From NCBI GenBank assembly GCA_965603825.1, contig CBFDEM010000040.1:682001-746000 (forward strand): a stretch of 64,000 bases of DNA, given 5' to 3'. Each line of letters begins with the position of its first letter. Positions within the stretch are counted from its first letter, which is position 1. This DNA is from Blepharisma stoltei ATCC 30299 (Eukaryota > Protista > Ciliophora). Of the stretch, positions 16,509 through 33,800 are shown one piece after another. The position numbers and the translations under genes were made by a program. The notes beneath the pieces are model-generated. The model saw only the letters and a program-made list of their open reading frames with translations. It was not told the origin of the DNA and searched no databases.

Positions 16509-17252
16509 TTACTTTGACCTTGGAGAAACTAATTCATTAATGGCTGTATGATACATGCTAAGTGCTTCATTGACTTGTCCTGAATCAAGTGCATGCTTCA
16601 TAAGAAGCAATTTTTTGCATGCCTCACTACACACGACTTTGTCCTTTTTTCGAATTCTTGAGTTATTGAAATAGCTAGCAATCCTAGGCTTGGGGAAGTT
16701 TACCGTGATGAAGTCACTTTTACTACCTTTTCTATTGCAAAATTGTTGGTTTGCACAGCAGATTGTAGAGAATTGGCAGATTTTCTGGTGCTGCTTTATA
16801 TTTTCAAGGGCGCAGATTTCGGGGCAGCCTTGGGATCTGTTTTTGCAGTAGATTTTTAAGCTGTTTATGTATTTAATTAGCAATAGGCTGGGCTCCCTTG
16901 GGGCTGCTTTGGATCTGCAAACAGGGCAGGTCAATCTTGGCTTCTCCATATATCTCGGCTGAGGCAGATACCGATTAGTGCTATGAGCCATCATATTAGC
17001 GCATTTTTTACAGATTAAAATCCCACACTGAATGCATTCAAGCGGCTCTCTGGCCACACCTAAACAAATTGGGCACAAAATATCTTTTCTTGGTGTTTCC
17101 ACAAATCTGCTCACTTCATATCCTTCTTTGAGGCTGAGGTCTTCAAATTTATAGCTTTCCAGTGACCTCATGGAGTCTTCTAAGTCTGGCTCCACAATCT
17201 CAACATACATTTGGGGGTTGTGATCATTCATTTTAAAAATTATTATACTCAT
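16509..17252 (-). CDS. RING plus TRAF/SINA-type zinc-finger protein (start 17252 or 17231)
   Basis: CPICLGVAREPLECIQCGILICKKC...CPVCR, followed by CKNRSQGCPEIC...HQKICQF. Confidence 0.8.
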   Translation of the reverse strand: MSIIIFKMNDHNPQMYVEIVEPDLEDSMRSLESYKFEDLSLKEGYEVSRFVETPRKDILCPICLGVAREPLECIQCGILICKKCANMMAHSTNRYLPQPRYMEKPRLTCPVCRSKAAPREPSLLLIKYINSLKIYCKNRSQGCPEICALENIKQHQKICQFSTICCANQQFCNRKGSKSDFITVNFPKPRIASYFNNSRIRKKDKVVCSEACKKLLLMKHALDSGQVNEALSMYHTAINELVSPRSK

Positions 17253-17280
17253 GTAACTAATAATTGTTATTTTAAATCAA

Positions 17281-18054
17281 TTATTCTTCTAATATGAAGG
17301 TGGGTTGAACATTTTCTTTTTTTGATTTTTGGATCATTTCTCTTAAGCCTCCAGCTCTTTTTGCTTTTTGCTGCAGCGCTTGCCTGACTTTTTCTTGTTC
17401 TGAAGCTGCCAGTGCTGAAACGGCTTGGCTGAAGTCCGGCCAATTTTCACTGAGGTGTTTTAAGCACTCTTTTGAGCCTGTCAGAGTTTTTTGTCTTTTT
17501 GAGTCCAATAGTCTAAGAGTGATATGTAGCACTGTATTAGGGTATAATCGGGGCAATATCGTAGCTAAATGCTGGTAGGCTATATCCGCTATTTGTCCGG
17601 ATTTATGAAAGCATCCTTCTAGCAGCTGGCGTGCTATTTCTTCACTTGTTACTGTGGCGCATATGTTGGTTAATGCAGTTACAGCTTCTCCACGAATAAA
17701 CGATTTTTCATTAACTGTTTTTGTCAGTAGCAAAGTAGCTACACACTGAGCAACCATTTCTGAGTTTTCTCGCGGTTCTGCAAAGCATTCGGAAAGAAGC
17801 AGTAAAGTGTTTTTTGAGAGTGAAGATCTTATTGAATCCATCAGCTCCATTACACGATCAGATACCCTTGGCCAGTAGTCTAAAAATTCGAGCCATCTAT
17901 ATTTATTGATAGCTCTTAATTGATCAATACCAATAAAATTTTCTTTCCAATTTTCAGAATGCAATAAGTAAAGGACAACTCCAATGTCTTGGTTAGATTC
18001 TTCAAGCGCTTCAAATGGTGTGTAGTCCAATCCAACTTCACCTTGCTGTTCCAT
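17281..18054 (-). CDS. TOG/CLASP-N-like HEAT-repeat protein
   Basis: NWKENFIGIDQLRAI...DSIRSSLSKNTL...NEKSFIRGEAVTAL follows the TOG domain pattern. First ATG is at 18054. Confidence 0.75.
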   Translation of the reverse strand: MEQQGEVGLDYTPFEALEESNQDIGVVLYLLHSENWKENFIGIDQLRAINKYRWLEFLDYWPRVSDRVMELMDSIRSSLSKNTLLLLSECFAEPRENSEMVAQCVATLLLTKTVNEKSFIRGEAVTALTNICATVTSEEIARQLLEGCFHKSGQIADIAYQHLATILPRLYPNTVLHITLRLLDSKRQKTLTGSKECLKHLSENWPDFSQAVSALAASEQEKVRQALQQKAKRAGGLREMIQKSKKENVQPTFILEE

Positions 18055-18155
18055 TTTAAATTTATCTGAATTGAGAGGGTCTGCATCATAGAATGAGATG
18101 TTCAAAATTTATAATTTTAAAATAAATTTTATTTAAAAAAATACTTTAGTGAGGA

Positions 18156-19013
18156 CTAAGACCTTAAATTTTTGAAAAATTCTTCTAGATCAGTCCCATC
18201 TGTCATTTCTATTGGCACTCGATTCGCTGAATAATCGTTTGGTTGGATCGATTCAGAGTCATAGGTCCTGAATTCTAAGCTACTCAATTGATTTAATTCT
18301 TCTCACGAAAAAAGCAATGAGCTAGTGTCCTCATCCCAGGAAGAAAACCCTAATAATCAGCATTTATACCTTGGAGGAATATCAACATATACATCAAAGC
18401 AAAAATCTTCAAAATTTATTACAGGATCAACCACATCATTATAGAAATCAGTTATTTTTTCCGTCAATATAATTTTCAATTCTGCAAGAAAAGGCGTATT
18501 TATTGACGTTTTTTGAGAAATTCCCACAATTTCGCTATTTTTCACAAAGCATCTAAAAGTCATGCCATCAGCTAAATTATGATATCTGACCAAATTCATA
18601 ACTAATGGTATCCCTAATTGTTCTGCCTCACTCATGTCATTTGAAATCAGCTCAGATGATTTAATTAGCAAAAGAACATCTCTGTATGTGCAGCATTTTA
18701 ACTCATGCATCCATAAGGCATCTCTATATAAACTTTACTGCGGGGCGCTTCAATTTAACTTTGGTACCACTCCTTTACCTCCTACATATTCTATTCCGAT
18801 ATTTATATCAGAGATTAATTTTCTCATACCTTCAGAACCTAGTAATAATTGAGCAGGATCTTCAGAATCATTTTCGTCTATCACAATGCTGTCACTATTC
18901 ATAAAATCATGGAAGGCTTGAGGAAGGGTAATTGAGTACGCTTTAAAAGAATTTTCTCCGAAATTAGCTCGCCATATGTGGTCTTGGCATCATAGCTTGA
19001 TATTTCCTTCCAT
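18156..19013 (-). CDS. CDC123: Cell division cycle protein 123 (D123 family), one intron
   Basis: With TGA=Trp and intron 18724-18738 it reads VPKLNWSAPQDALWM...DVLLLIKSS...FRCFVKNSEIVGISQ...FDVYV...LLFSWEEL. Stop is TAG at 18156. Confidence 0.9.
18724..18738 (-). other. 15-nt intron GTAAAGTTTATATAG
   Basis: Removes an in-frame TAA inside the conserved KLNWSAPxDA motif. Confidence 0.9.
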
Positions 19014-19708
19014 AAATTAAAAATTAAAGTGAGATACTCAAAAAAATGTCCAGCTATATTATATGGAATTCAGACGGCTATAGGTTGTTTGCTTGCAGTT
19101 TTAAATTAAATAGATACTTAGCAACAGTTTGCCGATTTTTTTATATTCAGACTCAAAATTTCAGACAAAAGAAAATCCCGACCAAAATTTAAAATAATTG
19201 CTTTGCTGTCAAAAAGGTAAGAAAAAAAATTCTGCACTGATTCAGACCGACTCATTATTCGGTTACAAAACTATAAGCGTGGGTTTTCATTTTCTATTTA
19301 ATACTTGAATAATATTTATTTTAAAACTATCAAAAAAGAAATAAAAATATTATATAGAATTCTATTGTTTTATCAATATATTTATACCTCAAACATATTC
19401 AGCCCTAAGTTTTCAGCTTCTTTTTTTGATTTTTTATATAATTTTCATAATAAACCAACTTATTAAATAAATTTCAAATAAAAACATGATGATTACAGCC
19501 ATCGAACCAATTCAAGCTCTTTAAATAAATTTGACGAGAGAGATTTCAAATGGATTAAATAACAAATTGATTACAGAAAGCATAGTATTGTGCCTCTTAC
19601 TTATGAAAATCCTCAAAAAAATTATATTTTATATAAAAATATTGGCCAAATACCTTGGCTTTAAAATTAAATTAATTTAGAAAAATAGAATATTTATCTC
19701 AAACATTA

Positions 19709-20404
19709 ATGGAATCAAAAATTCAAAATCAATCTGATGATTCCCAATCAATGGATGTGGAAACAGAGCCAGAGGAGCCAATAATGACTCCTTTTGAGTT
19801 TTTTATGAGTCTGCCTCGAAATGTGCCAGATCCAGGGCAGACCCATCTACCTCCAAAACGTCGAAGCACCCCAAAACGCACTTTAGTGCTAGATCTTGAT
19901 GAAACCTTAGTTCACAGCGATATAGCACCTACACAAACATATAAAGAAGTGGTCAGCTTTATGAGCCATGGAAGACTTTGCAATGTCTATGTGAGCTACA
20001 GGCCATTTTTGCTTGAATTTTTAAAAGCAGCTTCTCAAAAATTCGAAGTTGTTGCTTTTACAGCGTCACAGAAAGCATATGCTGACCAAGTGTTAAAAAA
20101 TATTGACCCACAGAGAAAATTGATAAAGCATAGGCTATATCGAGAGTCTTGCTATGAATATAAAGGAAATTATATTAAAGATTTGAGAGTTTTAGGCAGA
20201 GACTTAAAAGATGTTATCATTGTTGATAACTCAGTTTTATCGTTCGCGTTCCAGCTTGACAATGGAATACCAATTCTTTCATGGTTTAATGACCCTGAAG
20301 ACAGAGAGTTGTGTAATCTTGTTACATTACTGGATGAATTAAATAGTGCGCCTGATATTAGACCTGCGTTAAAAGCAAGTTATGATCTATCAAGGTTCGG
20401 TTAA
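19709..20404 (+). CDS. CTD small phosphatase-like protein (FCP1/SCP, NIF domain)
   Basis: TLVLDLDETLVHS, FTASQKAYAD, YIKDLRVLGRDL, IIVDNS, QLDNGIPI. Confidence 0.92.
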   Translation: MESKIQNQSDDSQSMDVETEPEEPIMTPFEFFMSLPRNVPDPGQTHLPPKRRSTPKRTLVLDLDETLVHSDIAPTQTYKEVVSFMSHGRLCNVYVSYRPFLLEFLKAASQKFEVVAFTASQKAYADQVLKNIDPQRKLIKHRLYRESCYEYKGNYIKDLRVLGRDLKDVIIVDNSVLSFAFQLDNGIPILSWFNDPEDRELCNLVTLLDELNSAPDIRPALKASYDLSRFG

Positions 20405-20630
20405 ATTTATGACAAAAATAAATGATATCTAATTAAAAATTTAAGTTGACTTAAAAAATAATTTTTTTTAAATTGGTATTGGATTAAAAATCAATATTAG
20501 GGTTAAATTTGGCAATTTTTTATTATTTTTAATTTTATTAAAAATTTAAATTGAAAATAGCAGATATGGTGTCTGCACTGCTATGATAGTAATAAATATT
20601 AATTTCTATATCTTAATTAAAAAAACACAG

Positions 20631-21356
20631 TTATTTAGATTTATGATGGGTTTTCCAATATTCTTCAGTTTTTTCACTTTCATGTGATGGTACAACAGTT
20701 GGTGCTCCAGGTGACCAAGACTCAGGACATACCTCTCCATGTTCATCTGTATATTGAAAAGCCTGCACAAGTCTCAAAACTTCCCTTACACTTCTTCCCA
20801 CTGGAAGGTCATTAATAGACACATGTCTTAATATCCCATTTTTATCAATAATAAAAGTTCCTCTCAAATGTACACCTTCATCCTCAGAATGATCCAAATA
20901 GACCCCATATCTTTTCCCAACAGCTTTACTGAGATCAGACAATAATGGAATTTGCAGCCTCCCCAGCCCTCCTTGTTCACGAGGTTTTAATGTGTATTCT
21001 CTATGGGTAAATACAGAATCCACTGAACAAGCAATTATTTCACAGTTATTTGACCGAAATTCAGGAGCCATATCATTAAAGTTGATAATTTCAGTTGGGC
21101 ATACAAAAGTGAAATCTAGAGGGTAAAAGAAAAGGACAACGTATTTGCCTTTGTATTCATCTAAAGTAAGCTGCCTCATTCTATTTCCATCCCATGCAGT
21201 GCCTGAAAAGGTGGGAGCTGGCTTGCGGATTCGAGCCATTGGAGCATAGGTTTTTGAGCAGACGATAGAGGTACAGGAACAATTTTCTCCGCAATCGCAA
21301 TTAGGCTGGCAGCAAAGTTTGTTTTCTGATGAGGCACAGTGTGGACAACTTGACAT
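20631..21356 (-). CDS. Typical 2-Cys peroxiredoxin with Cys-rich N-terminal extension
   Basis: FFYPLDFTFVCPTEI, GGLG, NDLPVGRS, HGEVCP. Confidence 0.95.
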   Translation of the reverse strand: MSSCPHCASSENKLCCQPNCDCGENCSCTSIVCSKTYAPMARIRKPAPTFSGTAWDGNRMRQLTLDEYKGKYVVLFFYPLDFTFVCPTEIINFNDMAPEFRSNNCEIIACSVDSVFTHREYTLKPREQGGLGRLQIPLLSDLSKAVGKRYGVYLDHSEDEGVHLRGTFIIDKNGILRHVSINDLPVGRSVREVLRLVQAFQYTDEHGEVCPESWSPGAPTVVPSHESEKTEEYWKTHHKSK

Positions 21357-21399
21357 ATTGTATTATATCAGATGTGGATATTTATAATAAATGGACATT

Positions 21400-21798
21400 A
21401 ATCTATTTTTGATCCCTGGGTATTTTGAGGTTAATATTTTAATTTTCTATGGTCTGTATACGGAACTTTTAAAGGTGAAGCTATTCCTTTGAACGTACAA
21501 AGGACTTTAGACAGCTGCTTAGAATACTCAATTATTTTAGGGTAAAACAGCCATTTAATAGTCTCTGCATGCGTATCTGTTAGTCTTGTCAGTGCTCTTT
21601 TGACAAGTCCCATTGCTGCTTCACACACTTCTAAGGTCTCCAAAGGAAGCTGCTTTTTCATTGGGCTTTGTTTTTAGGGGAGCTTGGTTTTTTTTCTTCA
21701 GAAGCGTCTGAAGAGATTTGAGATTTGAAGTCTTCTTCTGGCTCTCCTTCCTCTTCTGATTCATTCAGTTCACTGTCTTCTATTTCGATTTCCATCCC
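21400..21798 (-). pseudogene. Inverted, frameshifted 400-bp duplicate of part of the UBR4 gene (source about 39133-39546)
   Basis: Direct nucleotide match to UBR4 GMEIEIEDSELNE...PGIRNS, with a 12-nt deletion, two 1-nt deletions and about 20 substitutions. Confidence 0.9.
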
Positions 21799-21829
21799 TA
21801 AAAGCTAATTCTTATTATATAGCAATTAA

Positions 21830-23713
21830 ATGATCAAATCCAAATCAAATGCCGCAACTCCTTATTTAAAGAATTTTTCAAACCTCCAATCCTCATTATC
21901 AGGAAGCTCATCATCCTGCAGATTTTCTCTTACAAATCTAAATCAAAATTCCGTATATCTTGCCCAATCCTCAAATCATCAAGATAAAACTGATCCTACT
22001 CGCAATCCAACAAATCCAGAAGTGGCGCCTCAAAAGCCTTCTTCTAAAATTAGCCCTCAGCCAGGCACAATAATTCGTCAATCAATCCCTAAATCTGTTG
22101 CCTTATTCGATATTCCTCTATTCTTATGAATTGACTATAAAAACTTAATTCAAGATTATATAAATACTCCTGAAGATTACGAAACTACTGAAAGTCTTGT
22201 CGTTTTGGATCATCACTATCAAAAACACGAAGGGACTGCATCTGAATATTCAGCAAAAAATTATTTCAGCCCAGAAAATTTCAATAATTATCTCACACGA
22301 AATGTGTATATTGATAAAAAACCGTGGCTGAGAAGCATAAATATTTTATATAAAAAAGAAAATTTATCTTCATTACTGGAGCTTTATCAACAAATAAATG
22401 ATACGAAATACTCTTGGATTAGCTTTATAAAGCATCAAAGAAAAATGCTGATGAAACAGCAGAGATTAGAAGCTGCAGCAAGAGCAGAAAAAGATTTAGA
22501 AGACCAGAGAGAGCTATTACAAGAGCTGTCAAGAATAAATCGGCCATTTTTGGTGTCAGGAAAGACTGGGGTGAAAACTTCTAAACATATTGTATGTAAA
22601 ACTAAGAGAAAAAACCAAAATATTCAAAAAAAACTTAATAGCTTGGAAGAAAGATCTGAGTATGGAGAACAGAAACTTGAGCAAATGCATGAAGCATGAC
22701 AAAAAAATGTCAAGAAAACGACGCTGATTATCCTTTCTTTGAATATAAAAATCAGAAAATCAAGAGAAAAGTTCCTTGAAATAGGCTTGAAATCTGCTAA
22801 TAGACCTCTATTATTTTATATTTTTTCTGCAATGCTATTTTTCACAAGAATTTCTCACGAAAAAACACAGGTGGCCAAAATAAGTTCCCAATCCCTCAAA
22901 AACTGAAAAAAGAAACGGATCTTTCTTATACTAAAAGATTTTTCAACAAAAAAACAAAGAACCTTAATCTATATTGAAAAAATGAAAAATTACCTCAAAA
23001 TGCGAGAAAAATTAAGAATTCTTTATTATTGGAAACTTTTTTCTTACACATCTAAAGTCAAAAACTATTACAAAAGAATCGCTAATAAATTTTATCAAGA
23101 AAGACTAAAGACTAAAAAATTTTATGAATTAAAAACAGAAACTATAATAAATAAAGGCCAAAGAAAAAGAATTAAATTATTAGCAAATGGAGAAGAAGAT
23201 GGGTTTTCTAAAGATAATGTCATTATTGAACAAAAGCATTTTCTTTCTGTAGCGCTTATACAGATAGTAAAAGGATTATCGTCACACCAACAAAGAGCGT
23301 TTATTTTTCAGCAAAAATTAAAAACTCTTGAAGACTATATTTCTAATAAACATTATTTGTCATTGTACGCAAAAGAAGGAAATGTATGGATTTTAAGACA
23401 AAAAGGGTTAGGAGAGCATAGATCTTGTTTAGAATTAACAAGAAAGCCTTTGTTTCCTACAGTGCAGTTATCGGCAAGATCAAAAAACCATGGTATTCAT
23501 GCTAAATCTGTTGATGATGTACAGATTATAAAACATATACACGAAAACTATGCAACTCAGCAAAAGAGATATAATTCAATAACTCCATCTATAAGCTCAC
23601 GATATCAAGAAATAGAAAACTCAAGAGCAAAATTTTCAGAACTTCAAGAAACATCAGAGCTTTGAATATCCTCAGAAAAAAACATTGAGAATTTTCATGA
23701 GCAAAATGAATAA
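21830..23713 (+). CDS. Hypothetical basic helical protein with weak Sfi1-like repeats
   Basis: ORFs 21830, 22205 and 22982 share a frame via TGA=Trp. Stop is TAA 23711-23713. Confidence 0.7.
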
Positions 23714-23835
23714 ATAACTTAATTATTATCTAAAAAGACCAATTATATAAATTATGAGAAGAATCGTCTTGGAAATGATTTTATGTATAAAAAGCTAACT
23801 TCGCAATTAATATAACAAGATAATTTTATTTTAAT

Positions 23836-26800
23836 ATGGAAATTAAGCAATGCTTTGAAGCTAGCTGCAGAAGTGAAGTTGAGTATTCATGTGATTGCTC
23901 TTCTCCTGAAACTTATTCCTGCAAATTGCACTTAGCAGAGCATCTTGAGTCATCTAGCAATGCCCATCATTTTAAGCCTCTTTTTTGGAAGCCTTGTAAA
24001 GAAACAAAAGAGATGCTTCTTAGATTTCTTACAAAAGAAAAGTCTAAGCAAGATGAACTGAGGAAAAAATTCGTGGATTCTTTTGTTCAGAATCTTCAAA
24101 ATTTGAAAAATAATCTTGAAGAGCACTTAGATGAGCTGGACTCTAATTTGTTCGAAATTAATAGTTCCTTTGAAAAAGTTTTTCAAGCCCAGAAAATATC
24201 AAAATCCGAGCAGGATCCAATTTTAAAACTATTGACTCTGCATCCAGATGATGCTATTGAAAAAGCTAAAAAAATAATTCCAATAAGTTCAAATTTCTTA
24301 GAGACCGATCAAACAGCTTCTATAAAAAGCAAAAAAATAAAAAATGGAAGATTATGCAAGCACAAACTCACCCTCTTCTCTGTCTAATGGACAAGAAAAA
24401 CTTGTCATTGGTCTTGGAGAAGACAAAGTTATCTACAGCTTCTCTTCCTCAACTCATTTCCTACCAGAGCTTGAAGAAAACAAATTTTTAGAATTGTCAG
24501 TGAAATTTTATTTGTCTAAATTTCTCAAAGACTGCAACCAAAACAAGAAAAAAGAGCTCTTTTCAGCATTCTGCATCTCAGTTAACCAAAAATTTCCCCC
24601 AGAATCAATCCTAAGATGTCATAGATTACCTTCAGGAGATGCTATCCTGATCCCTAAAGAAAAATCAATACAACAAGATTTACTGAATCAAATCACATAT
24701 GAATTAAAATACAAAGGAAGAGACATCATGATACCAATCGGAATCTTATGACTAGGTGGTGAAATCAACTACAATAGGTATCGGATTAATTTTACATTAC
24801 CTCCTGGAATATCGATTGAGGAAACAATTAAATCATTAAAGCAAATCTGCGATATAAAAGAAATAATTATGAATAACACAATACAAAATGAAGGCAAGTT
24901 TCACAGTCTTAATTTTATACCAGAAGCAAAATACACAATATATGCTGAATTTAATTCACTAGAGCAAGCATTAGATCTCACAGATATATTGAAAATAGGA
25001 AATAACTCAGTATGATTAAATCACGCAGGAACAATGCAATGCAACACTTGTAACGAAATCGGACACCTTGAATCAAACCACGATAAAATTATTGAAATCA
25101 GAGAAAAAAGAAAAAGAATTAAGCAATCTAAGAAAGTCAAGAAAGGTTCAAGAAATTTAAATTTAATCGATCAAAAATACTTAGTCTCTGATAATAAATA
25201 TGAAAACAACTTAAAAACACGCAAGATCTCAACAATTAAGCCACCCAAAAAAAACATTCATCCTCCTGTTAAAACTCAGAATAATGAACCAGTTAATGCC
25301 TACAACTATGATATCAAGACATATATTCCTCTAAAGAAGAGCATCATAAAGCCGATAGAAATCATAGGAAGAACTATTCTAAAAGAAAATCACAAAAATA
25401 CAATCAAAAAAATTTTTATAATTAAAAAGACTCCAGCAATAAGGAAAAATGAACCAGAAAGAGAAGATGTAAATTGAAAGCTTATTAAGGAATCCTCGCA
25501 ATCCTATAATGAAACTGCTTCCAAATCTCCAAAACTTTCTCCATCATCAGAAATAAATTCATCCACTTTGATGACAGATTTTCCTGAAATAAACGTTTCT
25601 AAAATCGAAAACCCATTCTTACATAAAAAAGAAAAGAAAGAAAAACTGATAGTTGAACCCTTGATTTCAATTTATAACACCCAAAATAAGAAAAAGTTTG
25701 AAAATCCTTTCATCAATAAAGATGAAAAAGAAATTTACAAAAATAAAAAGATACAAATACTAGAGAGCAGAATGTTCCAAGATATGATTAGACCTCTATG
25801 CACAATTCTCTTTATTGAAGCATCTGATAATCTCACAGATCCAAAAAAATGATTGAAAATAACCCATTCTCCCTTAAGAAAAAATAATGTCCTACCTGTT
25901 CAAGTTGAAGAGGAAATTATAATTCCAAATCCAAGAAGATTGTGCGAAAAAATAATAAGAAAAAATTTTGGATTCATCAACATTTCAGGAATTGGAAAAG
26001 ACGATCTATCACGAAGACAATTAAGAAATGTTATGATCGAAAACGATATTACTATCTTAGGAATAGCAGAAACTTGATTAAAAGATAAAGTTTATATTGA
26101 TGGTTTTGTGTGAATAGGTAATAATGGACCTATAGTAGGCTACAGAGGATCAGGTGGAACTGGCTTATTAATTCATAATTCACTGGCAAATGAAATAACT
26201 TGAATTGAAACTAATAACCATAGAATAACTGCAGCAAAGATAGAAGATTTTTTGATAATATGCATATATGCACCAGTACTTGCAAACCACGAAAATGAAA
26301 AATCAATTAACGAATATAAATGAAACTTCTATATCAACTTTCAGAGGAAATAATAGACACACTATTATCGATTATATTATTTCAGAAACCCTATCAAAGA
26401 TTAAATACATAGAAGTCCCACAATTAAACACCAATCACGTATTATTACTATCTCATATAAAAAGTGTCCAGATAATACCAAAGCAAATATCCGTGATTCC
26501 ATGATATAAATTAGAAGGCAAGGAATTAGAAGCGTTCCAACACAGAATCTGAATCAATTTCCAGAATAAAGGAATCTACAAAACTCTTGATCCTTTAGCA
26601 ATATTTAATAACATCAAATCAACAATTGATGAAGAATCAAAATACCTACTAAAACATTTAAAACCAGACCATTTTAGAACCCCAGAAATGAAAATCTTAT
26701 TAAATAGAATAAATGACTCGAGGAAATGAATAAAATTTTGCTGAACGCAAAATAATAGAGAACTTGCTAACAAACTACAAAAGGTAAAAAAGGCATGAAT

Positions 26801-29800
26801 AAATAAACTAAAAAGACTATCTAACTATGAAAAAATCAGTGAAAGCAGATTGAAAGAATGTATGCAAGATCCATATGGAGCCTGAAACAAAATAAAACGT
26901 CAGATGAATAAAAATAGAATCGCATTATCATTAAACAAAGAAGAGATTAAAGCTTGAGCAACAGAATTTGAAAATCAATTTAAAAGTAAAATAGAATTCA
27001 TACCACAAAAGGGATGCTCAAAAGAAGAACTATGAGATTTCCAAGATATCCAGAAAATCATTAAAAAATTACCAAACAAAAAAGCTCCTGGACCAGACAA
27101 TATAAGAAATGAGATAATAAAGAAAGGTGGAGATATAATGGCAGAAGCAATTACACATTTCCTTAATAGTTGCAAATTAAATGGAATCCCAGACAAAGCC
27201 AATGAAGCAAAAACAATCCTTATATACAAAGGAAAAGGTAATCCGAAGGAACTTAATAGCTATAGACCCATAACCTTAATGAATAATTTTATGAAGATTC
27301 TTGACAAAGCAGAACTAAAAAGAATTGAAAATACGGTTAATATCTCAGAAAGACAACATGGATTCACAAAAGGAAAGTCATGCATGACTCAGATTTTTCT
27401 CTTAAAATCTACACTGGAATATCGTAAGTATTACAGGATTGGAAAAGGTAGAGACTCATATATATTATTTGTTGATTTCTCAAAAGCTTATGACTCAGTT
27501 AATAGAATTAGACTATTAGAGAAAATTAAAGCAAAAAATATAAAAAATGATAGCTGAAAAATAATCTCACAAATGCTAAAAGGTGAACAAACTACACTTG
27601 TCATAAATGGGATTGAAACAGAAAAAATAAACATAACAAGAGGTGTGAGACAAGGAAGTGCAATATCACCATTGTTATTTAATATATATATAGATGATAT
27701 AGAAAAGGAAAATAATGACATCAATATAGAACTCCTCCCCAACCACCAATTAAAATCAAAAATCAATTTTCAATATGCAGATGATACAGCTTTTGTAATA
27801 GAAGATTGAAAAGACATTGAAAACATTTTAAATAAACTTGATAAATGATCAAAAGATAATGATATGAACTTGAATATAGGACCGGAAAAAACAGCAATAA
27901 TGCCAATCATAACAAAAAATAGGAAAAATATTATAAGTAAACTACCTAAAATATCATACCAAAATCATGAAATACCAGTTGTTGAAAAATATAAATATTT
28001 AGGCAAAATAATGAATGGAAATATAAGAGGTACAGGATTCGACCAAGCGCATTATAAATACCTCAAAGATAAAAGCAAAATATCTACTTGCTCACTAATC
28101 CCTATGATTAGAAGAATGCTTAACATCCCAAGTAAAACTCTTATAAACTGCTTCAAAGCAATATTCTTACCAAGATGCACATATGGTCTTGAAATATGCT
28201 CAAGAATTAAATGCAAAACTGCAATTAAACAAATTCAAAGATCATTCAATAAGATTATAAGAGAATGTTGCCATGTTTATGACAAAACACCTATTGAACC
28301 CTTATTACTTGATTTAAATATTCCAACAATACAACAATATATTGACCAAAAATCATTGATATTTTTACAAAAAATTTTTGAATTAACACATATATCTGAG
28401 ATTGCAACCCATTTCCTAAGAAATTTCGATAATACAATTACACCGACAATGAAAATCTACCAAGAGTTGCTTCAAAAATATAATTTTACAAAACCATTCG
28501 ATTTTAATAACAACATGATTAGCTGAAATGACAAAAATTGAAAAGGAAATGTCAAAGATAAACTCAAAATCTATTGAAGAAACGAAAACATGAGCATAAT
28601 AAATAAAAAAGTAACATTAAAGATGTTTAAAGAATTAAGGAATCAAACTTTTACCACGAATAAACTCCCAAAATTCTGAATACTGAATAAAAACCTAATT
28701 ACTGAAACAAGAATAAAGGCTGCTTGAAGATATGGTGCTGGTCCATCTAAAGTATTAGTTCTATTGAGAAACAGAAATAATCAAGATAACATTCGAATTT
28801 ATGTGAATTATGTAAAGTCAAGGAAACAGATAAACATATTCTTAACGAATGCATAAAATATAAAAACGAAAGAATCAAATTTATACAAAGATTACAAGAT
28901 ATGATAGGCAGATATATTAACAATACAAGCATATACAATTGACTTATTTCAGATGTTACAGAATTAAAATTTTTAGAAGAATTAGGTGAAGAAAAATGAG
29001 AAAAGATTGACTTTTTAACAAAGATCACACTAAGAAGTATTGATGATAAATTGCGAACTAGCAGAGAAAACAGCAAACACAAGCATTTCTTTGAAATCCA
29101 AAATATTGAAGATGACCTCAAAAAAGAAAACATATCTATTCATGATTTAAATTTTTGAAGACTCGTTAAAAGTATAAGGCGTTTGAAATAGTACGCCAAT
29201 AATTAATTTAATCCTAATCCTAATCTATAAAAAGCCTAGATCTAGTTGTTGAAAAATTTATCGAGGAAAAGTTTGATAGCTTTTTAAACATATTATTTAA
29301 TATAGAACAAAAATTTGAGGAATACAATAAATCAATAGACATTACGGATGATTTTTCAAAAATAAAGCAGTCTATAAAAGAATTAATAAGTAAAATTGAG
29401 AGTAGCAGAATAGAGTTTAGTGATTTAAAGCAAAATCTTGGAAGGGGACAGCAAGAAAAAACTAAAAATGCTGTGGATGAGCAAAATTCTAAAATCCAAA
29501 TATTTACTCAAAAATTAATAGATCAAAAACATGAAGTACTAGGAAGAATAAACGACCCAGAATTTGAGCAAGATTTTCGAATTAATTGCTTATCATATGA
29601 TATCTACTTAAAAGAAATCAACACTTTTGATTCATCACTCAACCAAGCTTATCAAGAATACATCGGTGCTTACCATCAAATTGCATCTCTTTATCTTACC
29701 AGAGGAGGCACTGCTGGTAAGACTAATTTGATTGTTTATGATACCGAAAGCGAGCTTAAAGAGTCCAAAGTATTTAATACCCCAGATTCCTTAAATTATG

Positions 29801-30450
29801 GCACATGCATAGCCCAACTTCCAAATGGTGAATTATTCTGCTTTGGCAAAAATAATCCGATTTCTGGTATTGCAATAATAATTGGCAGAAATTCAGAATT
29901 TCAAGTTTTACCTTCTGGAACACCTTGCTCAGTTTCCTCAGCTATCTATTTTAATAGAAGCGTTTATTGCTTTGGAGGATATGATAACAAAACTGCTTTA
30001 ACTCTATCAGAGAGATTTGATTTAGATAGAAACCAATGAATTAAATTAAATCCTCTTCCACAAGACGACTGGCTTTGCCACAGCATAATATTTAAAATGA
30101 ATATTTTGATTTCTGGGAGCAAAAATAGAAATATTTTACGATATTCAATTGAAAACGACTCTTTCACAAAAATCCCTTTTCAGTTTGCACCTGGGAGAAG
30201 AAAAATCTTGCTAAATGCTGGGAGACTGTATTTAATAGAGTGCGATAATGGAATGGTTTATGAAAGCGAAGATGGGGATGAGACTGCTTGGAAACAAGTC
30301 GGAAGATCAATAATTCAGGAAGCATATCCTAGCCAAATTTATTGCGCATATAACAAAGAAGCAATATATATTGGAGTTAATTATATAAAAGTGCATGAAT
30401 ACTATAGATTTGATTTGGGTCCAAAATCTATGATTCCACTTTCGGTCTAG
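23836..30450 (+). CDS. B-box-like Zn finger / coiled-coil / Kelch protein interrupted by a retrotransposon (coding parts 23836-24330 and 29236-30450, 569 aa when joined)
   Basis: The join ...TASIKS|LDLVVEKF... is in frame with no TAA/TAG until TAG 30450. Kelch-like repeats: VYCFGGYDNKTALTLSERFDLDRNQW. Confidence 0.85.
24319..24330 (+). repeat. Target-site duplication, left copy (TCTATAAAAAGC)
   Basis: Exact match to 29224-29235. Confidence 0.92.
24331..29223 (+). mobile_element. Non-LTR (LINE) retrotransposon, APE-RT type
   Basis: 12-bp TSD TCTATAAAAAGC, APE and RT motifs, C-terminal CCHC finger, 3' hairpin and (TAATCC)n tail. Confidence 0.95.
24344..29191 (+). pseudogene. Retrotransposon polyprotein (Gag-like RRM plus Zn knuckle, APE endonuclease, RT, CCHC finger) with two frameshifts
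   Basis: CNTCNEIGHLESNH; NISG, GIAETW, GSGGTG, IYAP, IDYI; KAPGPDNI, YRPITL, QHGF, VDFSKAYDSV, GVRQGSAISPLLF, YADD, YKYLG; CELCKVKETDKHILNEC. Frameshifts at about 26315 and about 28790. Stop is TAG 29189-29191. Confidence 0.9.
29209..29225 (+). repeat. LINE 3' tandem-repeat tail TAATCC-TAATCC-TAATC
   Basis: Lies immediately before, and overlaps, the right TSD. Confidence 0.8.
29224..29235 (+). repeat. Target-site duplication, right copy (TCTATAAAAAGC)
   Basis: Exact match to 24319-24330. Confidence 0.92.
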
Positions 30451-30884
30451 TAAGCATTTTTATAAACTTTAACAAGCTATTTAATAATAAAGAATAAGCT
30501 ATTTTGATTAATGGGCTATGAATATCGTTCCAGCTCTAAACAGCCTCTTTCCTCAAACCTATACTTTCATATTGGCATGCTTATAAGATTAGTTATAGTC
30601 CATTATTTTGTTTACAAATAAGTTGTTATACCTCTTTAAAACATAATTTTTTCATAATTTAAAACTTTTATCTCAAATTTAATTTAAAATACCAAAAAAA
30701 CCTTAAATTGCTATATTTTTTTTTAAATTAACAAATCTAAGTTTAAAAATTGCACAGATCATTAATAAAATAATATAAAAACAGAGATAATAATATATAG
30801 GAATTTTTAACCCTCACTCAAAAATTGAAAAGGTAAGAAAGAAATAAAATTCATTCTGATCTGCAAACCCTAGAGTAAACTTTA

Positions 30885-33800
30885 ATGGACTCAGAATTAT
30901 TTTATTGAAATATGGTAACTTATAGTTAGCAGCGGGAACTCAATGAAAATGAAGGTCTTGACAGCCATTTTCTAAAACGACCAAGATCACCTGATAAAGT
31001 TGATGTTTTTCCATCAAAAACGTCGCCACCATCGCCAGATGAGCCTCCGCAAGAACCTGTGGAGTCAAATTCGCCTCGATTCCAAAGCTTTCTGACATCA
31101 TCAGGCATGTCCAAAGCAATTTGGTGCCTTCCAAACTTATCAAAGCTCATGTCCCGATTTTCAGCAGACGAGATGGTAATCGTAATTTAGGTCGAGACCG
31201 AGTGATTTAACTCTTCAAATGGGCAACTCTGGCGCTTGGTTCTCCACCCCAAAAACGAAGAAAAATTCATTGGCATTTATGTGGAAGCCTGCATCCAAGA
31301 GAATTTCTCCCCACAGACAGCAAACTTTACATTATCCTTATACGTCACCAAGAAGACAGGGAAAGTTATAAAAAAGACTTCAAAAACCTCACAAGACACT
31401 TTTACAATGGAGACCAAGCTAATTGGATACCCAAAGCTCATTTCTCACAAGAAAAATTCTTATTACTTAGACAAGCCTATGTACGTGGTGTGCTCACTTA
31501 GGCCAAGTATTAATTCTGAGACCTGCCGCCAAGCAACAGGATATGTAGGACTTGTAAATGAAGGGACAACCTGCTATATGAACTCGCTTTTACAAACTTT
31601 ATTTTTGATCACGTCATTTAGAAAGGCTTTATACTCAATAGTGCCGACTGATAGTGAATATGATAGGATCCCTCAGGCGTTAAGAAAACTGTTTGGAGCT
31701 TTGCAAGTCAGCCAAAATCCTCCATCGACACAAGAACTTTTAAAAAGTTTTGGATGGGGTCGTGACGAATGGCACATTCAACATGACGTCCAAGAATTTA
31801 ACTACACATTATCAGAAACTCTAGAAAGAAATATGAATGGAACTCTCGCCCAAGGCACCTATTCCAGCTTATTTAAAGGGAAAATTCTTCAAAAAATACA
31901 ATGTCTTAACGTAGACTACAGCTCAAAAAAATACGAAGAATTCATAGATTTGCAGCTTGACGTCAAAGGAAACAATAACATAATAGAAAGTCTCAAAAAG
32001 TATTTTTCACCTGTAGAATTAACAGGGGATATGCAATACGAAGCTGAAGGCTTTGGAAAACAAGACGCAAAAAAAATAATGATGATTGAAGAACTCCCAC
32101 CAGTCCTACAAGTCATGCTAAAAAGATTTGAATACAACCCAGCTAGAGGCTCTATGGTGAAATTAAACGAAAAATTCGAATTTTATGAAGAAATCGACCT
32201 GGATCCTTATATGCTGCCTGGAAAAAGAGGACTTAATAAATACAGATTGTTTTCTATATTGATTCATGCAGGAACACTCGCATCTGGACATTATTATGCA
32301 TTTATTTCGCCTGGGCTTGACGACAACTGATTTAAATTTAACGATGAAAACGTAGAAAGAGCGCTTCCGTCACAAGTAATCAGGGCAAATTGAGGAGGAG
32401 ATATGGAAGACCTCTTGTTATCAGACACAGGCGAAATCTCAATTGGCAATAAAAAAAGTGACACAAGCGCTTATATGCTATTTTATATCAAAAAATCAGA
32501 AAAAACCAAAGTTATTCCACCTATTAATGGCCAAGATATCCCTGTCTCTTTAGTATCAAATATCCCTGCCAGCGAAGTAAAAGTCAGAGAAAACAAAAGA
32601 GTCCGCAGAGTTCTACACTGCACAGTCGCTCTTGCAAGCAAAGAAACCATTATTGGCTGAAAAGGCCCAGGAATAGCCCCACCAGAGTCCCAAAGCCGCT
32701 TTTTTATTTATTCAACCCGCAAGAACTCAAAAGTCCAGTACATCATAGACACAAAACTTGCCCATTTAGGACCAATTAAGCTATGAACTTTTAGCCCAGG
32801 CCCAGTAAATTGAAAATTCAAAGAAATTGACCTAAACCAAATTTTGAATAATTATGCCTTTGAAAACAGCCTTATTACTCAAGCCATTTTTATAGAGTCC
32901 TCTAAAACTGTTTTTGATGGAAAAATCGACTCTTGAAGCTGAGATGACGGAAAAGATGAGTCCTCAGAAGAAAGTTCCCCAGAGCCAGTACAAGAAAATG
33001 GAAAAAATCCTGTAGTCAGCCCTTCTTCACATATATTTGTATTTGTGAAAACTTTTGTGAACGGGGAATTGGAGATTGTAGGGGTAGAATGAATTGAAGA
33101 TGCCGCTGCTGTTATGATAAAGCAGAAATTATTTGAAAAATATTTCCCTGGAGCAGCAGTTGGCTGGATTTGTATAGAAAGGTGTGGCAGTGAAGAAGTC
33201 AGGATTGAAGAATTAGTAGGTTTTGTGACAGGAAATAAAGAGAAAAAAGGGATGATAATAGAAAATGGGGACGCTTTAATTATAGGTAGCGATATCAGTC
33301 AAAATATCCCTCACAAGCTAAGAGAAGTGGCTAGTAACGTAGAAGTCCAAGTCCTTTATTATGACCTGCATCAATATTTCAATTTTATGTCCTTTTCTAA
33401 GCAGCTTCTTGAGAGAAACATGTTCCCACAAAAGCTTGACTTAAAGCTATCGCTTTCTTACACCCAGCATCAAGCAATGAAAATTATTGCAGACGCTCTC
33501 AAGCCTTATTGTCCAGAAATATCAGAAAACCAAATAAACCTACTTGGACCAAATATGGTGCCTTATACATATTCGCCTGAATTTTTCTTATCAAAAATCC
33601 TGCAAAATAAGAAAATTTATTATGATATTTCTCAATATGATTTATTAGCAATACGGGGGATGCTACATCTGCAGGTCGTGTTTTTTGATGAAGAATATTG
33701 CCCTTTACGGTCTATTCCTATAGTCATTCTTCAAGAAAGCACTGTAAAAGATGCATGTGATATGATGGCCAATGAGCTGGAAGGACTTCCTGAGCTGTTT

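Follow-up and report, generated by a model that had tools for sequence, protein, structure and literature searches.

An IES that very probably removes the endonuclease core of a LINE from the somatic genome of Blepharisma stoltei

The TA-bound IESs of Paramecium and Blepharisma are excised by domesticated PiggyBac transposases. The 173-nt IES considered here, which lies in a LINE of Blepharisma stoltei, is like them in having a TA at both ends, of which one is kept, and in being precisely removed and germline-limited. Typical IESs, however, interrupt host genes, the function of which is restored by their removal, whereas this one lies in a mobile element and its removal destroys coding capacity. 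In the Drosophila P element, retention of the third intron in the soma blocks the transposase. By analogy, both elements have their enzyme complete in the germline only, but P element control acts through RNA splicing whereas the B. stoltei LINE undergoes DNA excision, for which regulatory evolution is unsupported. The REP non-LTR retrotransposons of Tetrahymena thermophila (Fillingham et al. 2004) are likewise LINE-type elements under ciliate DNA elimination; they are micronucleus-limited and eliminated whole, whereas the B. stoltei LINE stays in the soma minus a 173-nt internal piece.

The closest description concerns the same species, since an IES that knocks out a LINE endonuclease in B. 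stoltei is already known from Seah et al. 2023 (PNAS 120:e2213985120, PMC9942856), whose main text mentions IESs within several coding sequences for retrotransposases. Their SI Results and Fig. S7C describe six copies of rnd-1_family-273 with such an IES (173-182 bp, >96% identical), each of which encodes almost half of Exo_endo_phos_2, with the consequence that excision knocks out the somatic endonuclease (PMC9942856). The copies of this family are >99% identical, a sister cluster stands at 60-70% identity, in some copies the IES joins APE and RT in a single frame, expression of the genes of these elements is negligible, and further copies are mentioned in low-quality 'cruft' contigs (PMC9942856). 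The authors conjecture, citing these IESs, that foreign DNA is marked by scnRNAs and yet only partly excised, where sites suit (PMC9942856). The element that we studied has seven copies spanning the corresponding site (97.5-99.8% identity), inserts of 173 and 175 nt and a sister family at 68-74%, and it is almost certainly one of the published rnd-1_family-273 copies, matched by these features rather than by the family label. The value of the present analysis is thus a base-resolution confirmation at a single locus plus a few details, namely the junction TA at 26317-18, the 173-nt length, the target-site duplications (TSDs) and tails of each copy, the frameshift at 28791 and the junction of the copy on contig C46.

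The window is the whole 64,000-nt stretch of B. stoltei somatic (MAC) DNA that was analysed, contig C40:682001-746000, and all translations were made with TGA read as Trp (code 4). In public records, the proteins of the LINE locus bear the name Blepharisma stoltei. Features of the LINE copy in the window are as follows, with coordinates, strand and description:

24320 to 24330, +, upstream TSD CTATAAAAAGC; the same 10-11 nt occur after the 3' tail
24331 to 29225, +, non-LTR retrotransposon in its somatic IES-minus form, 4,895 nt (copy alignment, TSD)
24344 to 26353, +, somatic upstream ORF in frame 0, with N-terminal region, CCHC knuckle and N-terminal endonuclease half (code-4 translation)
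25040, +, CCHC knuckle CNTCNEIGH within the somatic upstream ORF
25964 to 26318, +, N-terminal half of the APE endonuclease (NFGFINISG ... GIAETW ... IYAPV ... NEY), which aligns with the intact domain of the sister family
26268 to 28856, +, somatic downstream ORF in frame +1, 862 codons from the first ATG, with the reverse transcriptase (translation)
26317 to 26318, no strand, TA very probably remaining after removal of the 173-nt IES, that is the excision junction (germline-form record, run contigs, somatic copies)
26319 to 26450, +, C-terminal part of the APE domain in frame +1 (NETSISTFRG, IDYI, NTNH; code-4 translation, sister alignment)
27243 to 27803, +, reverse transcriptase domain (Pfam RVT_1, 48.9 and 38.3 bits on two TGA-free pieces)
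28791 to 28792, +, private 1-nt deletion of the window copy, ACA-TTCG against ACACTTCG in the other copies (alignment, run contigs)
29210 to 29225, +, 3' tail of short repeats (AATCC TAATCC TAATC), which differs between copies
29226 to 29235, +, downstream TSD TATAAAAAGC, which repeats the upstream copy together with the preceding C from 29225

The reverse transcriptase carries the YxDD signature of a LINE (YADD at 27774), and the break in the coding sequence lies upstream of it, within the endonuclease. Frame 0 reads ...ICIYAPVLANHENEKSINEY as far as 26317 and, past the junction, meets a TAA at 26351-26353, 11 codons further on, while frame +1 from 26319 reads NETSISTFRGNNRHTIIDYI... and stays open to ~28853; the two open frames overlap, frame 0 running from ~24344 to 26320 and frame +1 from 26301. 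The code-4 translation thus bears out an earlier note on this DNA, which had placed a +1 frame switch at the TATA of 26315-26318. That note had also found GDFN missing and the stretch between YAP and TF/IDY too short, and this too holds: YAP and STFRG are separated by ~20 residues in the somatic form and GDFN is absent between them in the somatic frames of the window. For the Pfam searches we used TGA-free pieces, the somatic pieces being searched separately and the germline form being taken unaltered from the public record, and no endonuclease domain was found on the somatic pieces of the window element.

Using an exact-sequence look-up of the ORF at 23836-24384, we traced the locus to its record in the published MAC+IES assembly (GCA_914767885.1 CAJZBQ010000040.1:928301-951643, hereafter L026). 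As this record consists of IES consensus sequences placed into the MAC assembly, its flanks and the window are not independent sequences. Along window 16821-31768 the two run colinear at 99-100% identity, broken by ~14 inserts, one of which falls at the frame break: window 26280-26318 ends at L026 16274, window 26317 onward resumes at L026 16446, and the 173 nt between (L026 16275-16447) are bounded by TA at 16273-74 and 16446-47. The TA repeated at both insert boundaries in L026 is exactly 2 nt, and a single TA stands in the soma. With the insert in place, L026 14300-18982 is one 1,561-codon ORF with a CCHC region, an endonuclease reading LLGDFNAH and the reverse transcriptase. A 157-residue TGA-free piece of this germline form (L026:16160-16630) scores 46.1 bits for Exo_endo_phos_2 (cut-off 27.4) and, in a PDB sequence search, gives a weak match (E = 0.04) to the TRAS1 endonuclease 1WDU across GDxNA. 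The AP-endonuclease domain that Pfam identifies upstream of the RT in the germline form thus has no hit on the somatic pieces. The earlier note had predicted a nested, TA-bounded IES and proposed a comparison of paralogues and the germline form across the junction; this comparison was run and yielded a TA-flanked insert that codes for GDFN and brings APE and RT back into one frame. The note was right that sequence had been lost, although its estimate of ~140-170 nt was too low (173 nt by both the germline-form record and the sister family), and the breakpoint, which it had left unfixed from one copy, is placed by L026 at the TA of 26317-26318. In public gene models the window locus is split into a 541-aa and a 722-aa protein (L026 14684-16482 and 16817-18985).

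A second germline record (L025, reached via protein P0002) covers the copy on contig C57, which carries a homologous insert. This insert is 175 nt long owing to an extra CA, the frame is not restored in L025, and the C40 and C57 inserts differ by three substitutions and the 2-nt indel. Protein P0002 itself switches frame just past YAP, reading ...YAPDLQITKMKNQLTNINETS. Two more IESs occur in the C57 germline copy only, an IES of ~645 nt (L025 2491-3135) at the window equivalent of 25120-25135, with which loose contig ends at 25120 in X4 and X7 fit, and a 358-nt BogoMITE-like insert (L025 6077-6434; TAACTCCCCCCCC...GGGGGGGGAGTAA) at the TAA of 27934-27936. Both are later germline insertions into the LINE, removed in the soma.

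The same segment is present in the soma of a sister family that is 68-74% identical to the window element (copies on C11, C25, C45, twice on C51, on C12, C38 and others). At the homologous position these elements retain 173 more bases, which encode ...VLLGDFNAH... (...QIVLLGDFNAHLKGYL...), and a 187-residue TGA-free piece from them scores 43.8 bits for Pfam Exo_endo_phos_2 (cut-off 27.4). Their homologous sites are TA at left and TC at right. A family that is without the right-hand TA and keeps the segment in its soma fits the conjecture of Seah et al. that excision occurs where sites are suitable.

We then considered how the window family, hereafter family A, came to be without the segment in its somatic copies. 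A 771-nt germline query was compared with the 64-contig, 41.46-Mb MAC assembly, in which no copy of the insert was found; each family-A somatic copy matches positions 1-300 and 472-771 only, as two adjoining pieces that overlap by 2 nt (TA), so that the flanks serve as an internal positive control, and the sister family gives a colinear match over 1-739 at 70% in the same search. The IES interior alone had no match in the MAC assembly, a query that lacks the flank control and is uninformative by itself, and among annotated B. stoltei proteins a word search using the sister-family piece gave just four hits, all without the insert. The seven somatic copies that run across the site (C40, C39, C37, C30, C59, C15 and C57) share one identical junction.

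This uniformity is what an ordinary evolutionary deletion would give, with 173 nt lost once from a master copy and its dead descendants then multiplied in trans or through duplication: a single ancestral event accounts for exactly the same junction in 7/7 copies at 98-100% identity, and an older LINE fragment described below has a 57-nt gap over GDFN in the MAC+IES record as well. Against it, the germline-form records of the window locus and of C57 both hold the segment, TA stands at both boundaries, and six such IESs are published (PMC9942856). Independent evidence comes from Logan contigs of four public runs, which were aligned to 23600-29500 and which inform at the level of contigs rather than of shares of molecules. 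An X4 contig continues for 134 nt behind 26318, starting TGAACTGCATCATG... (TGAACTGCATCATGAATG...), and a second X4 contig has 67 nt before 26317, ending ...GGTTTACATATAT (...GAGACAATGGTTTACATATAT); both strings agree letter for letter with the L026 insert ends. Beyond 26318, an X7 contig extends for 226 nt; X3 and X6 contigs cross the junction in the IES-minus form. The run contigs therefore hold both segment ends joined to family-A flanks, and together with the inserts of L026 and L025 they rule out a deletion common to germline and soma. Loss of the segment by ordinary deletion is, on this evidence, extremely improbable.

A mapping artefact would offer a different account, in which the IES-containing reads derive from intact paralogues, either somatic and unassembled or germline-limited, and the window copy has no IES. 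At least eight near-identical copies exist of this 5-kb repeat, and more lie in the published 'cruft' contigs (PMC9942856); the placement of the insert at the C40 copy rests on long-read mapping by the original authors within this repeat, and contigs cannot link the insert to unique flank. The segment has, however, no copy in the 64-contig MAC assembly, the differences between the C40 and C57 inserts suggest a locus-specific consensus and not one source, and an artefact sits badly with the exact TA-to-TA geometry and with six published loci whose inserts measure 173-182 bp. We regard this account as very improbable.

The reading that we retain, with a probability of roughly 95%, is that the window holds the somatic form of a recently amplified LINE, and that a 173-nt TA-bound IES with the endonuclease core is precisely excised from its germline form. 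Each germline copy examined carries a TA-bound IES of 173-175 nt in the middle of the AP-endonuclease domain, 173 nt at the window locus, and during development of the new macronucleus the insert would be precisely removed, with a single TA kept at 26317-26318. Excision would take out the strand with the Mg-binding GDFN core (~57 codons), and since 173 = 3x57+2 it would shift the frame as well. Judged from its sequence, the somatic DNA would then specify an N-terminal product cut short and, in another frame, an RT that lacks a functional endonuclease. Cutting would presumably be done by a PiggyBac-type excisase guided by scnRNAs, as for other Blepharisma IESs, and the segment may be removed either through usable TA sites that flank it by chance or through its absence from the parental MAC. 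Given the negligible published expression, this 'disarming' may lack functional consequence.

The copies themselves arose by retrotransposition. A search of the same genome gave seven further copies at 97.5-99.8% identity with different flanks, six of which (C39, C37, C59, C30, C15 and C57) span the same junction while that on C46 starts there. The germline form of the window element is 5,068 nt long. The 5' ends of the further copies correspond to window positions 24340, 24353, 24429, 24429, 24450, 25077 and 26308, which together with 24331 in the window copy makes seven distinct 5' ends for eight copies. The C40, C30, C39, C46 and C37 copies have TSDs of 8-16 nt (CCATGCTTACT(A/T)ACTT for C30, TCAAATGCTTT for C39, TATACATATAT for C46), and the tails across copies are (TAATCC)n or AATC-like. 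These TSDs, 5' truncations and tails characterise target-primed reverse transcription rather than segmental duplication.

Upstream and downstream of the junction, the open stretches vary from copy to copy, and each copy has private lesions. In the window copy a C is missing at 28791 that is present in 7/7 other copies, and contigs of all four runs insert a C behind 28791. As a result of the deletion, the C-terminal CX2C...HX4C zinc knuckle (frame 0, to ~29191) no longer shares the RT frame, so that even the germline form of this copy is not fully intact. The earlier claim of an intact germline copy and a disarmed somatic one is therefore sustained for the APE-RT frame, which the insert restores, and fails for the copy as a whole. 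Contigs of all four runs also show a 71-nt skip at 29112-29184, which is an internal deletion of the C15 copy.

As the IES occurs in independently inserted germline copies (two here, six published), the RNA template must have contained it, and we infer that this template was transcribed from germline-form DNA; new copies would accordingly have been reverse-transcribed from IES-containing, germline-form transcripts. The 5'-truncated copy at C46:371157-374074 (L008/L033, minus strand), the homology of which starts at the IES junction, has in addition the 9 nt with which the germline IES ends (TACATATAT), and these lie inside its 11-nt TSD, which abuts the element on both sides. A larger IES sharing the right boundary at C46 was considered and is disfavoured, the TSD and the 9-nt match fitting a 5' truncation joined by microhomology. 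From its sequence, this 5' junction looks like microhomology-mediated joining of an IES-containing cDNA.

Several other inserts and gene models of the locus deserve mention. The ~14 germline inserts lie within 15 kb (window 16821-31768 against L026), at positions near 18140, 20060, 20480-20492, 21400, 21710, 21799, 22610, 24046, 26317, 29609, 29715, 29939, 31343 and 31390. That at 21709-21711 (389 nt) has poly-C/poly-G ends (TGACTCCCCCCCC...GGGGGGGGAGTGA) and resembles the published BogoMITE. The insert at 24046-24047 (4,791 nt, L026 9213-14001) lies ~285 nt upstream of the LINE within a 183-aa gene at 23836-24387, its junction overlap is AA, not TA, and on checking neither LINE homology nor a long ORF was found in it. 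The 183-aa gene model is chimeric, its last codons, from 24331, belonging to the 5' end of the LINE.

An older, decayed LINE fragment adjoins a sister-family copy at ~5295 of L034 (GCA_914767885.1 CAJZBQ010000038.1, protein P0003) and has an in-frame 57-nt gap over the GDFN stretch with the junction GGAAT|TATAAAA. The idea that a third LINE lineage independently carries another IES over GDFN is unsupported, the MAC+IES record having the same gap; this would be a deletion of long standing or else a short IES that escaped annotation. In the latter case, a 57-nt gap at a TA would fit recurrent targeting.

It is also conceivable that the IES acts as a germline/soma switch, the element being autonomous only in its germline form and copied only from IES-containing micronuclear or early-anlage transcripts. 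Independent insertions that contain the IES require such transcripts, and the nine IES nucleotides of C46 are a hint of them; we nevertheless consider a switch unlikely. Were it true, either the transposon would have been selected to carry its catalytic core on an IES, being somatically harmless and so tolerated, or the host would be disarming it. The intact somatic endonuclease of the sister family means that the excision is no general defence, and it argues for coincidence.

Under the reading preferred here, ciliate genome editing would take coding sequence out of a mobile element rather than restore a host gene, leaving the element complete in the germline only. The use of an IES-containing template in retrotransposition would further imply transcription of germline-form DNA, and the locus is relevant to the debated question of whether IESs are excised as a form of genome defence or simply of accommodation.
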